DNA of 64,000 nucleotides from Dimorphilus gyrociliatus (lineage: Eukaryota > Animalia > Annelida), in the NCBI GenBank assembly GCA_904063045.1, contig CAJFCJ010000001.1, positions 620,001 to 684,000 of the forward strand. Direction: 5' to 3'. This document shows positions 6,940 to 17,630 of this stretch, piece after piece. The translations under genes and the position numbers were made by a program. Below the pieces are notes generated by a model. The model had not been told where the DNA came from and searched no databases. It worked only from the letters and a program-made list of their open reading frames with translations. Each line of letters begins with the position of its first letter. The stretch's first letter is position 1.

Positions 6940-8131
6940 ATGATTCAATTTCAACTAAATTCAAACAATGAACTCATTTCCATGCCTTCTTGTGGATGTA
7001 TGTTTAGGTGTAAAAAGTATTTATACCTTTACAATATTTTTTTTGCAACAGTGGGTACGTATAAAGTTACTGGAGAGCAGATGTATGACTTATTAGATGC
7101 AGCTTTAAATGCTGGTTATCGTCTTTTCGGTCAGTAAATTTTCATAATATTAACGCCTATATTAAACAGTGATCACTATTTTCAAACTATAATAGACACC
7201 GCTTCAGCGTACCAGAATGAGGAGGCAATTGGTAGCTGCTTGAAAGAATTGTTGTTGAAATATAACCTAAATCGGACAGATGTATTCATTACAACAAAAC
7301 TTAGTTGGCTGTCTATTTGCAAATAAATTTGTACGTTTACATAATTCTTATTCAGAACCGAGAGAGCATGGCAAAGCAAGAGAATCTTTGTGTTCATCTT
7401 TAAAAAGATTATCCATGGATTATGTCGACCTGTATTTAATTCACTGGCCAGGAGCTCATGGTAAGAAACCTAACGATTCGGAACATAAAGAAGCTAGAAG
7501 ACAAAGCTGGCTTCAAATGGAAGAATTACTGAAAGAAGGAAAAGCAAGAGCAATTGGTGTATCCAATTATACAATAAACCATTTAGAGGAGATGTTAAAG
7601 TTCTGCTCAATTAAACCAGCTGTTTTACAAGTAGGCAAGATCTATTATTCAGAATAGAAATTCAAAAAAAAAACGAAATTTAGAGCGAGCTTCACCCTTT
7701 GTTACAACAACATGACCTACGAAAATTCTGCAAAGAGCATTCCATTCACTTTCAAGCTTATTCATCTTTAGGTAGTATGAAAAACACTTCTGAGGTAAGC
7801 TCCCCGTTAAAATTTCTATTTTTAATTAACCTTTTTCAGGTCCTGGCTAACGATGTCATCTTGAATTTGGCAAAAAAGTATAATAAATCGCCAGCAAATA
7901 TTGCTTTAAGATGGGGAATTGAGAATGAAAGTAGTGAGTTTATACAAAAAAACATTCATGATAAATTAATTTGCGATCCTAACAGGTGTTATACCAAAAT
8001 CAACTAATCCCGAACATATTAAGAACAATATTTGTCTGTATGATTTTGCACTGACCACCGAAGATTTGAACCAGATAGCTAAACTTGATAAAGATTGTCA
8101 CTTTTGTTGGGATCCTGTTGATATTTTGTGA
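6940..8131 (+). CDS. Aldo-keto reductase
   Basis: Multi-exon; GTYKV, GYRLF|DTASAYQNE (catalytic D and Y), FITTKL (K), YVDLYLIHWP (H), KARAIGVSNY, ending CHFCWDPVDIL*. Confidence 0.95.
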
Positions 8132-8303: not shown

Positions 8304-9893
8304 TTAATCATCAAAGGTTCTTTTGGTGCCTTGAAATTTTTGAAAGCCTCTTGATCCTCCTCTTGAACCACCTCTGAAGCCACCTCCTCCTCTAGGACCT
8401 CCACGGCCGCCTCCTCGACCACCAAATCCACCACGCCCTCCTCTACCTCCAAATCCACCTCTTCCTCCACGACCACCTCCGCCTCGTCCACCACGACCTC
8501 CACCGCTACCACGGGGAGTTGAAAAATCCACAAATACATTTCTACCATCTATGTCCAAACCTTGCTTTTCAGCAAGACTTTTCTTAGCATCCTCTTCAGA
8601 AGCAAATTCTACATATCCAAATCCCTTGGATTTGCCTGTATCTTGATGTGTGACAATGCGAGCAACAACACCACCCATAAGTTCTTTTAGTGTTTCTTCA
8701 GTGGTATCATAACTCAAGTTCTTTACAAATAAGGTTTTTGAAGGAACACCATCCGATGTACCCTTTCTATCTCCTTTCGTGTTTTTGCTTTTAGTACCAC
8801 AGAAGTCTAAAAAGAGAGCTTGTCCTTTCAATTCTTTTCCCTGATGTTTTTCTAATGCTTTTTCTACATCCCCTTCAGAAGCATATTCGGCGAAAGCAAA
8901 TCTGTGAAAAACAGTAAAGTTACTTTTCATTCTACATTGAAAATTGGATATACTGCTGGTTAGCTAAATATCAGACAAATGCCTCGAGATATTAAGATCA
9001 TAGACACAACGTCTATCAATAAATATGGTAGCTTTCTCGTTCATCATTAACTTTCATTTCATTTGAGCTAAGTCATTTGCTAACTTTTACTCACCCTCTA
9101 TGACCCATTCCTTGTTTATTTTTAGCCAGTCTTATCTCTACAGCATCATCAAATATGTCCTTTATATCCTTCTCTGTTACTTTTTCTGCGATATTCTTTA
9201 TAAATAGCGTATTCTGATCTTTTTCTGCGGAAAAAATATGTTTTTAAAGCTGGGAAGAACTTATTTTGATAAACATATCTAAGATGAAAGTATCAGGCCA
9301 AATGCCTAGAACTACATGTACATAACGTGTTCAGACTCGTCATCTGTTCATCATTTAAACAAAATACTGTTAAAATTTTACCAATAACTTACTTTCAAAT
9401 GTGTTGGTTTTGGGTTTATCATTTTTTCCTTTATTGTCTTCTCTGATAGATATTTCAGCCCCCTTCCATTCGTTTCCACTTAAAGAAATTCCTTTTTGAA
9501 GGTCACTCGATTTCTCAAGAGTAACAACAGCGAAATCTTTTCCATGAAATTTATCAATTTCTTTGACGGCTATTTTCTCTTTTTGAAAAAATTTCTTTAT
9601 TTGAGTTTCTGTCAAATCCTGTACGCCTTTGAGAAACAATTTCCTGTTTCCTCCTTCATTGTTTTTGTTGGATTTTTTAGGTTTAGCGCTTTCATCGTCT
9701 GTAGAAAGTAATGCATAATTGTTACGGTTATATTTTGTGACACAATAATATTGCATCAATTATATATAATAGTCATAATTTGGCACTTATCAAGGGAAGA
9801 TTCCCAGAGATCTAAATCTATGAGAATGGCAAAAAAGTGCAAGAAAAAGTAATTTTACAAAATCTTACCGTCGTCGTCTTCTTCCTCCTCCTC

Positions 9894-9929
<36 letters not shown>

Positions 9930-10067
9930 TTCCTCATCCGATGACTTTTTGGCTTTTTTCTTAGGAATAGAGGATTTTGCAGTAGTTGCTTTACGCTTCT
10001 TAGAGACATTTTCATCATCATCATCATCTACTTCTTCATCATCATCATCATCATCAACTACTTCTTC

Positions 10068-10098
<31 letters not shown>

Positions 10099-11102
10099 AT
10101 GTCAATGTCTTCATTATCATCATCGTCGTCATCATCATCATCATCTTCAGTTGTTTTCTTTGCTTTTTTTGCCGGAATAGATGATTTTCCAGAGTTTGCT
10201 TTACGTTTTTTTGCGGGAGATTCTTCTTCATCATCATCATCATCATCTCCTTCCTCGTAATCATCATCATCATCATCGTCGTCGTCGTCGTCGTCATCTT
10301 CATCATCACCGCCACCATTTTTTGCCGAAATTTTCGGTACCTTAGCACTTACACCTTCTGTTTGAAAAGGGATGAATGAATTTCAAGTCTGAAAGTAAGC
10401 TGTCGGTTTTATACCCTCTTCATCGTTACTTTCTTCGTCTTCTTCTTCACTGTCCATAACTTCATCTTCGCTAGATACTTCCTTTGGTGGAGGAGCTGCT
10501 TTTTTCTTTGGTGGTTGATTCTACATGAGAAAACACGTTAGATTTTGTGAGATTAAGTGAAAGTAACAATCTAAAGGCATCTATTCGTGAGAAATTTATT
10601 TCTTTGTAGTGGTGTCAGATACTTTTTTCATCGAAAAATTTATGAAGAGCTAGATAGTTACATATCGTCCCTGACAAACCACTTACCATTAAATATTCTA
10701 ACGGGATCTCTTGAATATCTAATGCTTTCATCGCATCACAATATACCCGTACCACACAGCAACACTCGCCGGGCATTGCTCTCTCAGCCATTAAATTAGC
10801 TGTAGCGCGTATCAGCGCTTGCCGCACTCTTTGCACGCCGGGCAAAGGAATTGACTCTATTACAAGTTCACATGCTTTCCCTTCATTATCTTATAGCGCT
10901 CACCGGGCGCTCTAAAAATTTATGTATATGCACGCCGGGCATATAAGAAAAAGTTTCAACGCCATTTTCCCCTTATTCCGACCAAAACGAGGTACATTTG
11001 CCAGTCAGCCGAATTGATGACTACACCTGTAATGTTCTCTTCTGTCGTTCGAGTTAAGCACCCATTCTTTACCTGTTTGCTTTTAGTAGGTTTAGGTTTC
11101 AT
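8304..11102 (-). CDS. NCL: Nucleolin: N-terminal acidic tracts, three RRMs and a C-terminal RGG/GAR domain; snoRNA host gene
   Basis: MKPKPTKSKQ|NQPPKKKAAPPPKEVSSEDE resembles the nucleolin N-terminus; long D/E tracts; RRMs with KLFLKG, LFIKNI..GFAFAEY, TLFVKNLSY..GFGYVEF; GGRGG repeats; terminal KRTFDD. Confidence 0.93.
8966..9052 (-). ncRNA. Intronic box C/D snoRNA (SNORD15/snR13-like) guiding 28S rRNA 2'-O-methylation at the yeast A2281 equivalent
   Basis: In NCL intron 8902-9094: box C ATGATGA (9047-9041), box D CTGA (8974-8971) ~69 nt from the 3' splice site; guide CGAGGCATTTG is an 11-nt perfect complement of conserved 28S CAAAUGCCUCG (recalled). Confidence 0.85.
9288..9359 (-). ncRNA. 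Intronic double-guide box C/D snoRNA (SNORD15/snR13/snR75-like) targeting the 28S yeast A2280 and G2288 equivalents
   Basis: In NCL intron 9225-9392: box C ATGATGA (9354-9348); D' CTGA (9334-9331) preceded by AGATGACGAG (complement of 28S CUCGUCAUCU); box D CTGA (9296-9293) preceded by AGGCATTTGGC (complement of GCCAAAUGCCU). Confidence 0.9.
9717..9843 (-). ncRNA. Intronic box H/ACA snoRNA candidate guiding 28S pseudouridylation
   Basis: In NCL intron 9699-9868: hairpin 1 with lower stem GCACTT/AAGTGC, upper stem ATTCTCA/TGGGAAT and pocket strands TTGCC and CTTCCCTT; H box AAATTA (9781-9776); second hairpin TGATGCA/TGTGTCA; ACA at 9722-9720. Confidence 0.7.
9869..10320 (-). repeat. Coding (GAT/GAC/GAA)n trinucleotide tracts encoding the acidic domain of nucleolin
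   Basis: Long runs of tcatcatca/tcgtcgtcg on the + strand, punctuated by basic KK-rich spacers. Confidence 0.9.
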
Positions 11103-14802: not shown

Positions 14803-17630
14803 CTAGTACAGGCCTATTTCTTCAAGGATGCTTTGGGGTTCGTCACTTTCCTGTAATGTAAAAGAATCATTAACGAAGCATTTAATACGTAAAAAAAGAT
14901 GGTTAGTTTATTGGTGTATAAAAAGGAACAAATATACTAATTTAGTAATTTTAATGAGAGTTTAGCATTGTTGACTGATAATTAATCAAATATGTAGATA
15001 CTTACATTGTTAGTATTTTGAAGAGACGCAACAATTCACTTTCGAGATAATAGGGTTTACATAAATGAAACAAATATAATAATACATTGTATACTTGTTT
15101 TCAATGCCAATATATTAGTATAATAGCTGCAAGCCTACTAATGGGATAAATGAAAAATAACGCTGAGGTCTCATTGTCTGCTATAATTTCCTATATGCAA
15201 TGCATTTACACGTAGAGAACTTCACATCATTTTCTTCATAAATGAAAACAATCGATTTAACTTCATTTCCTTTTTAATTTTATTTTACAAAAGAAACAAT
15301 TTTCTATCTAATGATGAGCTGTTTGATTTTTGTTTTTAAATAGAGAAATCAAAAGAACCATTCCACAAAAAATAGAACAAAATCAAAATAATTTAGCGTC
15401 TATACAATAGAGGAAAGGAAATCAGAATTTTGATATTTTTTGAAAGAGAAGAAAAACAGACACTTTCTTTTTTTTTCTTGGTTCTAGAAATTATTACATC
15501 TATCGAGATTGTACAAAATATGACAGGTTATTTTGTCTCTCCCTATTACCCTAACTAATGCATGACAAATTGATAATAAATATTTATAATTGCATGTTCA
15601 TGCGTCGTTATATGCTCAAGCATTGTTACAAATCACTTAAAACTTGCATGCAATGATTACAAGGTCTGTTTAAAGAAGTCAGGCAATTTTTTTATAGACT
15701 CAACCTAATCCGTTATCTTCAAAAAATCCTTGCGGCATTTCGTCCTGTTTTATGCAAGAAAGAAACTTGATACAAATCAAGAAGCTTGATGCAAATGAAT
15801 AAAGAGTGCAATTGGATAATGCTTCTTCACAAAACAACCAATATAGTAAGAGAATTTTCGATGTAACAAAATAAAAACGGACCTACTAAGCCCATAAGAA
15901 AAGAGGGATGAAAAAAATTATATACGCCATAATCAACCAGTCTCTCATAATAATTGAAAAGTCTAAAAATCTGCTTTAAACCAATTTTGAGAGATAGAAT
16001 TTTCTTTTGTTCAAATATGCAGGTGTACTTTTTTAGTATAGGATTTTTAAGAGTTTTATATCTAAAACACGTATTCATATTTGTGGTAAGCAGATTTTTA
16101 GGTTGCATACCAACAGATACAACAAAAGAAATTTTAAAGATTGATAATGATAATCGTACCTCTTGCAGTAGATCGGCAGCTGTTATGGCTTTAAGCACAT
16201 TTTTCTTCGAAGTCTCTTGTACTTCTCCTCCCAGAACGAATTCGTCAAGAACAAAATAGGCTTTTTCAAAGTTGAATATAATATCTAATTCACAAACCTG
16301 TAAGCACCAACAAGCACTTTTAAAAAGACGTATTTAGAAAATTTAAGTAATAATCAATGAGCATTCAATGATTTTAAATGAATTTGATAACTTCAATACT
16401 ATTACGTTTAAAATAGGGATTGTTTAACTTCTAGATGAATAATTATTTTTCAAATTCATTCCTCTCAATGATTGAAGTGATTAGAAAAAAGCGGAGCTTC
16501 CATTTAAAAAATGAAATAAATAAGAAAGGATTGATAGGAGTGACAAAAAACAAGACAAATATAAATAAATTTCATGCTAAAACTAAACTACCCATATCCT
16601 TGAATAATAAGGGAAATTCTTTAAAAAAAAAAGAAGTTACAACGATCTTATATTTTAATTAGTATTTTTGTTCCCAAGTCATTTACACACTCACACTGCC
16701 AAAGTATTTGTCGAGTAATTCCACATAACGATGAATAATCTCTAAAGTCAGCAATTCATTATCTTTAGCATCGACACAGCAGCAAAAGTATAAACTGGCA
16801 TATCTGTCCAATTTTGAATAAAAAAAATATATATAAATCTACGGCGTTTGGTCAAAAATAATTGACCGTTACGAGTAATACTAATTGTCATTCCTTTCTG
16901 AAAAAGTATGTAGTGTAAGACATAAAGCTTTTTTTTTTAGGTTAATATTTTGGCTTAAGTTTAGGAGATATATGCGAGTATGTCTACGAAATGAGAAAAG
17001 ATTTAAGCTTGAAATACGAGCAGAAACACAATATTAAAAAAATCAGGTGCGAATTTGTGCACGTAAGTTGAAATTACAGAAAATCAAAGGGGCAGTACGT
17101 TATTTAAGCTTTAATTTCAAATTTGAAATTATTTGTGTATACTTTTCTCACTTACGTTTCCGAAATATTTATCTAGCAATTCGACGTATCGATGAATTAA
17201 TTCTAAAGTCATTAATTCGTTGTCATTTTTGTCAACACAACAACAAAAATAAAGGCTTGCGTACCTGCCAGTTTGTATGTTATAAAATCATCATATTTTA
17301 ATTTATAGTAAAACTAAATGTGAAAAAAATTACTCTTACCGTTTGTAAACAACTTTCTTATCCTTCCATTCAATAAAACTACACATTTTTGGCTTTCTTG
17401 ACAAAACATTCGTTATTAATTCCCTAGTAATTTTCTTCTTCAGTTTCTCTTGGTGGGCGACAAACCATTTTTGTAATCGTAATTTGCCTTGTCGGCTGAA
17501 TAGCAGCATAAATTGCAGCTGAAAAATGGATAAAGTTAGGTATCACACCTGAATAATTAGCGCATTCGCGGGGAAACTCTAATAAAGTATTTTATTCATC
17601 ATAAGGTGACATAAGTTGATTACAAACCAT
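14803..17630 (-). CDS. AP1S: AP-1 complex sigma subunit
   Basis: ATG-only first exon (17630-17628, tentative); [63 protein letters not shown]; distal last exon [15 protein letters not shown] at ~14850-14803. Confidence 0.93.

Follow-up and report, generated by a model that had tools for sequence, protein, structure and literature searches.

Two putative SNORD15-type box C/D snoRNAs with guides offset by one nucleotide in neighboring introns of an annelid nucleolin-like gene

Here, we report on two intron-encoded elements in a 64,000-nucleotide stretch of DNA (contig CAJFCJ010000001.1, positions 620,001 to 684,000; this whole stretch is called the window), in which a nucleolin-like gene on the minus strand holds one small nucleolar RNA (snoRNA) of the box C/D class in each of its last two introns. 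The exons of the host gene encode RRM domains and a C-terminal RGG tail, with acidic runs further upstream. The top named homologues of the host protein are the nucleolins of vertebrates and molluscs, and the closest named protein is DgyrCDS3768 of Dimorphilus gyrociliatus (Dinophilidae), with 67% identity over the last exon. Judged by these sequence matches, the host gene is nucleolin-like, and the animal is an annelid close to the dinophilids. The intron borders were set by spliced RNA contigs from three public runs (X8, X1, and X2), and one RNA run showed zero mismatches to the window over the listed pieces. We refer to the element in the last intron as copy 1 and to that in the penultimate intron as copy 2 (Table 1). 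Both look like genuine intron-encoded box C/D snoRNAs of the SNORD15/U15 group (yeast snR13 and snR75), which would be released from the host pre-mRNA as stable RNAs and would assemble into small nucleolar ribonucleoproteins (snoRNPs). We consider it probable, as the best explanation of the whole, that they are two real snoRNAs that arose by duplication and divided their targets, the methylated positions being predicted from guide pairing.

Each copy has a C box (AUGAUGA) on its 5' side and a D box (CUGA) on its 3' side, and both boxes are invariant in three annelids. An earlier reading of the window from its letters alone (the sequence-only reading) had noticed ATGATGA...CTGA in two consecutive nucleolin introns with the D box ~68–69 nt from the 3' splice site, which the sequence and the spliced contigs bear out, i.e., the D boxes end 69 nt (copy 1) and 68 nt (copy 2) before the 3' splice sites. 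In animals, intronic C/D snoRNAs typically have the 3' splice site ~70 nt downstream. The two D guides that it had written out are confirmed letter by letter; its list of guides lacked the D' guide of copy 2 (for G2288/G3771) and a likely accessory guide of copy 1. None of the other GGCATTTG sites within the window is a snoRNA.

Guide pairing was measured against the eukaryotic large-subunit (LSU) consensus and three rDNA loci. Briefly, the three reverse-complemented guides tile into an 18-mer, GCCAAAUGCCUCGUCAUC, and extension by the complement of the copy 1 motif GCUACC gives a 22-mer; at least 120 metagenomic contigs carry it, with the consensus context CUCUCUUAAGGUAGCCAAAUGCCUCGUCAUCUAAUUAG, and the flank of the target is conserved over the 120 eukaryotic LSU contigs with the 22-mer. 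Three contigs (L008, L041, and L085) are, according to Rfam, complete eukaryotic rDNA with the target site inside the LSU rRNA; these whole loci were used for Rfam annotation and for guide-complementarity scans, and the rDNA contigs otherwise supplied target-site contexts and the count of one second 28S motif, both in pooled form. The 28S target string that the sequence-only reading had given is identical to the consensus of the 120 contigs. In the 11-bp duplex of the copy 1 D guide (positions 2–12), position 5 falls on the third A of GCCAAAUGCC, the equivalent of yeast A2281 and human A3764. The D guide of copy 2 forms 11 perfect bp at positions 1–11 with GCCAAAUGCCU and puts position 5 on the second A, i.e., by the position-5 rule, on the equivalent of yeast A2280. 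For the D' guide of copy 2, the duplex is 10 bp long, and position 5 meets the G located seven bases beyond the third A (yeast G2288, human G3771). The rRNA-complementary stretches of at least ~10 nt abut the D or D' box in all three cases (11, 11, and 10 bp). The 18-mer also occurs once in an IMG/VR contig (L007:3843-3860); we rejected this viral-contig match as chance because its context is not rRNA.

In copy 2, the targets of the D and D' guides share 2 nt, so that the two guides cannot bind one rRNA simultaneously; the same has been pointed out for the two targets of Arabidopsis U15 (PMC8053127). This overlap would suit an explanation in which copy 2 is a single-site guide for G2288/G3771 and its D-proximal pairing only docks the snoRNP, leaving the second A unmethylated, and in yeast snR75 a conserved extra base-pairing element in the second guide region stimulates methylation 4–5 fold (PMC3116282). 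However, with the exception of one, the accessory elements of yeast do not adjoin a D or D' box (PMC3116282), whereas in copy 2 a perfect 11-bp duplex abuts a canonical terminal C/D motif, the standard catalytic arrangement. Moreover, methylated sites have been assigned to the homologous D guides in human SNORD15A and Arabidopsis U15. We regard mere docking as quite improbable and take the D guide of copy 2 as a putative methylation guide in what follows.

Both elements recur in related worms, where the sequence-only reading had suggested that they be looked for. A relative (Logan contigs L001-L003) was found by a protein search with the last exon (87% identity), and the gene of Dimorphilus gyrociliatus is on contig L004; in both, the two snoRNAs sit in the same two introns. 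In the three-species intron alignments, 59 of the 65 columns inside copy 2 are invariant (20 of 120 outside), and the corresponding fractions for copy 1 are 55/77 inside and 29/126 outside; with so little change in the snoRNA bodies and a diverged remainder of each intron, this conservation is more than chance. The distance from the D box to the 3' splice site is 66–67 nt in L001 and 69–71 nt in Dimorphilus, and in Dimorphilus an A-U pair of the copy 1 D'-C' hairpin is replaced by G-C, a compensatory change.

Table 1. Window coordinates of the host exons and introns and of the parts of the two snoRNA copies, with the related copies of a mussel on contig L005
Feature	Position	Strand	Evidence or remark
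Last coding exon (RRM domain and RGG tail)	8304-8901	-	Open reading frame; Pfam RRM_1 E 2.3e-23; spliced contigs stop at 8901
Last intron, 193 nt, houses copy 1	8902-9094	-	Joint 8901/9095 in RNA contigs X8, X1, X2; GT..AG
Penultimate coding exon, RRM start	9095-9224	-	Spliced contigs; weak RRM_1 match
Penultimate intron, 168 nt, houses copy 2	9225-9392	-	Joint 9224/9393 in X8, X2 contigs; GT..AG
Copy 1, putative box C/D snoRNA (ends approximate)	8966-9050	-	Read from sequence
Copy 1 C box AUGAUGA	9047-9041	-	
Copy 1 conserved AAAGCUACC	9035-9027	-	Includes GCUACC 9032-9027
Copy 1 D'-like UUGA	9019-9016	-	Degenerate; UAAG in L001
Copy 1 D'-C' hairpin, 5 bp	9015-9001	-	
Copy 1 C' box UGAUCU	9000-8995	-	
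Copy 1 D guide CGAGGCAUUUG	8986-8976	-	Followed by spacer U 8975
Copy 1 D box CUGA	8974-8971	-	
Copy 2, putative dual-guide box C/D snoRNA (ends approximate)	9288-9359	-	Read from sequence
Copy 2 C box AUGAUGA	9354-9348	-	
Copy 2 D' guide AGAUGACGAG	9345-9336	-	Followed by U 9335
Copy 2 D' box CUGA	9334-9331	-	Canonical
Copy 2 C' AUGUAGU	9317-9311	-	Weak
Copy 2 D guide AGGCAUUUGGC	9307-9297	-	No spacer, runs straight into the D box
Copy 2 D box CUGA	9296-9293	-	
Mytilus trossulus SNORD15-like copies	L005:14105-14260, 15500-15655, 17056-17211		Spaced ~1.4-1.6 kb

A gathering-level Rfam scan of the window and of the mussel locus in Table 1 gave zero matches, and the scan that the sequence-only reading had proposed yielded sub-threshold SNORD15 matches for both copies and none at gathering. 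SNORD15 (RF00067, clan CL00045) has a gathering threshold of 75 bits and a vertebrate-type model of 146 nt. Copy 2 scored 26.2 bits against it and 32.3 bits against plasmodium_snoR21, in both cases via its 5' guide, and copy 1 scored 18.3 bits against SNORD15 via its guide only. At the level of the guides, the D guide of copy 1 agrees in every letter with the consensus guide that Rfam SNORD15, fly Me28S-Am2589, and plant SNOR75 have in common, and the 5' half of copy 2 matches the consensus of SNORD15 and Plasmodium snoR21. The SNORD15 D guide (GAGGCAUUUG-U-CUGA, third A) is exact in copy 1; the SNORD15 D' guide (GAUGACGAG-N-CUGA) is in copy 2 and absent from copy 1; and the D guide of copy 2, GGCAUUUG-GC-CUGA, is off the SNORD15 register by one. 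Because of the sub-threshold scores, the shorter length (~70–85 nt), and this departure in register, we do not file the pair under the SNORD15 model of Rfam; on their sequences, both RNAs are placed beside it as putative SNORD15-type relatives in function and evolution.

Several observations weigh against the interpretation that we favor. Neither copy qualifies at the Rfam gathering thresholds, and no Rfam match whatever is obtained with only the D-guide end of copy 2. The terminal stems of both copies are weak, copy 2 has a degenerate C' box and copy 1 a degenerate D' box, and the folding z-scores (−0.6 and −0.9) are no better than those of shuffles, which is uninformative. Box C/D snoRNAs are normally without strong folds. 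No stable RNA of 70–90 nt was seen among the assembled contigs, and there is no intron contig coverage in X8, where the bin depth equals the exonic fraction multiplied by the spliced-contig depth; this absence is uninformative, as expected for assembled, probably poly(A)-type data. Finally, the conservation rests on only three annelid genomes, two of them close. One could then consider that the conserved blocks are other intron elements, e.g., splicing regulators or decaying snoRNA relics, and not stable snoRNAs, with which the lack of the mature RNA in the assembled contigs, the missing gathering-level Rfam match, and the poor folds would agree. However, the complete C and D boxes, the 10–11 bp guides at the exact box distance, the constant splice-site distance of 66–71 nt, and the near-invariance despite 67–87% protein identity of the flanking exon all suit functional snoRNAs, and we give this explanation scarcely any credence.

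The conserved 5' element of copy 1 needs a separate consideration. Its GCUACC is complementary to GGUAGC, which lies directly 5' of the D-guide target; this pairing is only 6 bp in the window, which is a further point against our interpretation, and in Dimorphilus the complementarity beside the target reaches 10 bp (GCUACCUUAA). The element is probably an accessory guide, i.e., a site of extra base-pairing. Conserved extra base-pairing near the target stimulates methylation in yeast (PMC3116282), and accessory guides are documented for snR13, vertebrate U15, and Arabidopsis U15 (PMC3116282, PMC5389607, PMC8053127). The 5' region was also considered as a D' methylation guide and is ruled out, as the 7 nt beside the D'-like box differ in the three species; the conserved AAAGCUACC lies 8–16 nt from that box. 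A search for an 18S or other rRNA target of the 5' element gave nothing convincing. The best alternative is GUAGCUUUUUGAU in 28S domain V, with 10 bp in the window (9027-9040) and 13 bp in Dimorphilus (L004:4771-4784), one G-U each. This pairing needs an A at a variable position, and A is found in only 5 of 56 LSU contigs; the variable 28S base lies within GACGUNGCUUUUUGAU, and the middle base of GACGUNGC varies among eukaryotes. Pairing with domain V may be considered a minor possibility for this element.

Which adenosine copy 2 would methylate is less straightforward than the pairing suggests. The sequence-only reading had assigned the third A to copy 1 and the second A to copy 2. By the position-5 rule this assignment stands, and on balance we lean towards it. 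The register of copy 2 is that of yeast snR13, which fits the idea of a rebuilt yeast pattern. The neat notion of one copy per A is, however, weakened by the C at −1 of the copy 2 D guide, i.e., directly before the D box, which by the yeast data may displace the methylation to position 6 and which also counts against our interpretation. In yeast, van Nues and Watkins found that a C as the last guide nucleotide can be read into a five-nucleotide D' box, which leads to methylation at position 6 (PMC5389607). Position 5 of snR13 (C + UCGA) corresponds to L2280 and position 6 to L2281, and a change of this C to A favors L2280; the effect of the C concerns mainly boxes without a C of their own (PMC5389607). 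Taken together, copy 2 may methylate the second A, both A's, or mainly the third A.

If the D box of copy 2 were read as CCUGA, the methyl group would be placed on the third A or on both A's, and copy 1 would be redundant or a booster. The yeast case, in which a C at −1 lengthens the D' box and shifts the methylation by one nucleotide, speaks for this; active guides have a C at −1 less often than expected (PMC5389607), and copy 2 shares both the register and the C at −1 with snR13. Nevertheless, the box in copy 2 belongs to a terminal motif with a fully canonical CUGA, the dual targeting by snR13 also needed an accessory guide, none being evident in copy 2, and the two registers are strictly conserved in three species, which argues against their being equivalent. 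We think that a CCUGA box is rather unlikely. Regarding the snR13 type as a whole, the register and the C at −1 are found in copy 2 (...UUUGGC followed by CUGA), and the unusual D' box and the accessory guide are not (the CUGA is canonical, and we found no accessory element); for these last two reasons, copy 2 is not filed as an snR13-type dual-site guide.

The relatedness of the two copies, which the sequence-only reading had called paralogous, is visible only through a mussel. In a direct alignment, copy 1 and copy 2 show no similarity outside the boxes and the guide. The nucleolin-like gene of Mytilus trossulus houses three near-identical canonical dual-guide SNORD15-like copies of ~110 nt each, with GAUGACGAG-G-CUGA and CGAGGCAUUUG-U-CUGA, which score below Rfam gathering. 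Copy 2 shares with them the 5' guide and the non-guide AUGUACAU...GUAGUU, and copy 1 shares the C' box and the UAACAU before the guide (UGAUN-UAACAU); the comparison with these canonical copies supports paralogy. The sequence-only reading had further pointed out that the host differs from that in vertebrates; the host here is nucleolin-like, as stated, but this is not peculiar to this worm, as the Mytilus nucleolin gene shows. No SNORD15-like guides were found at the nucleolin loci of Haliotis, Argonauta, Tegillarca, and Branchiostoma, so the association of SNORD15 with a nucleolin host is patchy.

On these sequence comparisons, the annelid pair would best be read as a duplicated, subfunctionalised SNORD15. 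The two copies most likely go back, through tandem duplication, to a single SNORD15-like gene of the canonical dual-guide form, with a D' guide for G2288/G3771 and a D guide for A2281/A3764; in the simplest history, which we infer from the shared parts, this gene would have lain in a nucleolin intron and would have been duplicated into the neighboring intron, followed by complementary loss. Copy 1 would have kept the canonical D guide with its 1-nt U spacer and lost the G guide, and it would steer fibrillarin to the third A of GCCAAAUGCC. Copy 2 would have kept the D' guide for the G, and its D guide would have become one base longer. The change from G-U-CUGA to G-GC-CUGA in copy 2 amounts to two added bases, both complementary to 28S; since this is unexpected for a random insertion, it argues for a selected re-registration and not for a spacer slip. 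Together, the two RNAs would yield an AmAm...Gm cluster at the H70/H71 junction, similar to that of yeast. That dinophilid annelids do methylate the second and third A of GCCAAAUGCC and the downstream G through two paralogous guides offset by one nucleotide is a tentative proposal, which we find quite possible, if somewhat less likely than not.

If it holds, this would be a clean animal case of snoRNA duplication followed by division of labor, with methylation at the yeast A2280 equivalent, a site absent from the human and Arabidopsis maps (PMC5027482, PMC8053127). By duplication and a register shift of one base, an animal would have come to the AmAm pattern that yeast makes with one "sloppy" guide, and such a history would imply that methylation of both A's at the H70/H71 junction was selected for. 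Copy 2 is also a natural terminal-motif case for the question of whether a C before the D box shifts the methylated nucleotide. In addition, two snoRNA genes, with a probable third nearby, are annotated in a poorly annotated phylum, and a snoRNA family that is placed elsewhere in vertebrates is seen to be hosted by nucleolin in annelids and mussels; nucleolin is already known as a host of other snoRNA families, i.e., U20 and U23 (PMC3035437).

Some observations on the host gene and its surroundings are added here. The third-from-last intron (window 9699-9868, minus strand) contains an H/ACA-like element with a 5' hairpin, GCACUU...AAGUGC; this hairpin and the following AAAUUA are well kept in L001, the 3' part less so, and the matching intron in Dimorphilus appears to be only ~58 nt long as read from the sequence, with the element absent. 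The H/ACA-like element in 9699-9868 has no Rfam match. In run X2, a marine metatranscriptome, a spliced transcript over window 8488-9699 is ~4% different from the window and has the same exon junctions, which suggests that environmental samples contain a population or species closely related to this one. Near the 5' part of the gene (window 10358-11072, minus strand), RNA contigs have alternative joints, from 10520 to 10687 or to 11073, together with a 57-nt intron at 10358-10414; reads seem to be cut within the acidic-repeat region (9865-10318). Just downstream of the nucleolin-like gene lies a convergent aldo-keto-reductase-like gene (window 7280-8007, plus strand), and an Aldo_ket_red open reading frame is at the matching relative place in the relative (L001:2356-2580), so local synteny is kept.

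The closest known systems include the human, yeast, and plant guides for the same 28S region. Human SNORD15A/B (U15, RF00067) is a dual-guide RNA whose D' guide is found in copy 2 and whose D guide is found in copy 1. In the annelid, these functions are on two RNAs of ~85 and ~70 nt, in contrast to the 146-nt model; the D guide of copy 2 is one base longer, with position 5 on the neighboring A; and the host is nucleolin-like. The vertebrate host of SNORD15 is RPS3. In humans, the D' guide of SNORD15A directs methylation of 28S G3771 and its D guide that of A3764 (PMC5027482); the sequence-only reading had held that vertebrates methylate only the A2281 equivalent through SNORD15, which agrees with the third A as the D-guide site and leaves out the G seven bases on. 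The Mytilus trossulus copies have the nucleolin host family and the guides as in the annelids, and none of them is register-shifted or split.

In yeast, snR13 guides A2280 and A2281, and snR75 guides G2288 (PMC4174444); that the single RNA snR13 serves both A's, as the sequence-only reading had stated, agrees with the literature (PMC4174444, PMC5389607). It addresses the same AAA stretch as the annelid pair, and copy 2 has its register (position 5 on the A2280 equivalent) and its C at −1; an accessory guide is also part of snR13 (PMC5389607) and, apparently, of copy 1. It is, however, independently transcribed and makes both methylations with one internal guide next to an unusual D' box (UCGA/CUCGA), whereas the annelid pair consists of two intronic RNAs with canonical terminal CUGA and two registers. 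Yeast snR75 guides Gm2288, seven nucleotides 3' of A2281, with extra base-pairing beside the target (PMC3116282, PMC4174444); the D' guide of copy 2 targets the equivalent G. It is a single-guide RNA from a polycistronic cluster, and copy 2 has instead a second guide abutting the D box. We found nothing usable in the literature on fly Me28S-A2589 data or on a direct comparison of snR13 and SNORD15.

Plants show the same two targets and the same D-guide consensus as the annelid pair (Arabidopsis U15; plant SNOR75, RF02539). The D guide of Arabidopsis U15 directs methylation of A2282 and its D' guide that of G2289, and an extra pairing common to both targets has been proposed; the neighboring second A is reported as unmethylated, and there is one RNA, not two (PMC8053127). 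Nucleolin introns likewise host U20 (C/D) and U23 (H/ACA) in vertebrates, so that these snoRNAs are expressed along with a factor of ribosome biogenesis (PMC3035437), although they belong to other snoRNA families with other targets, and we found no sequence relation between them and the annelid pair. Set beside these systems, two paralogues whose guides differ by one register are a modest variation within the known box C/D logic.

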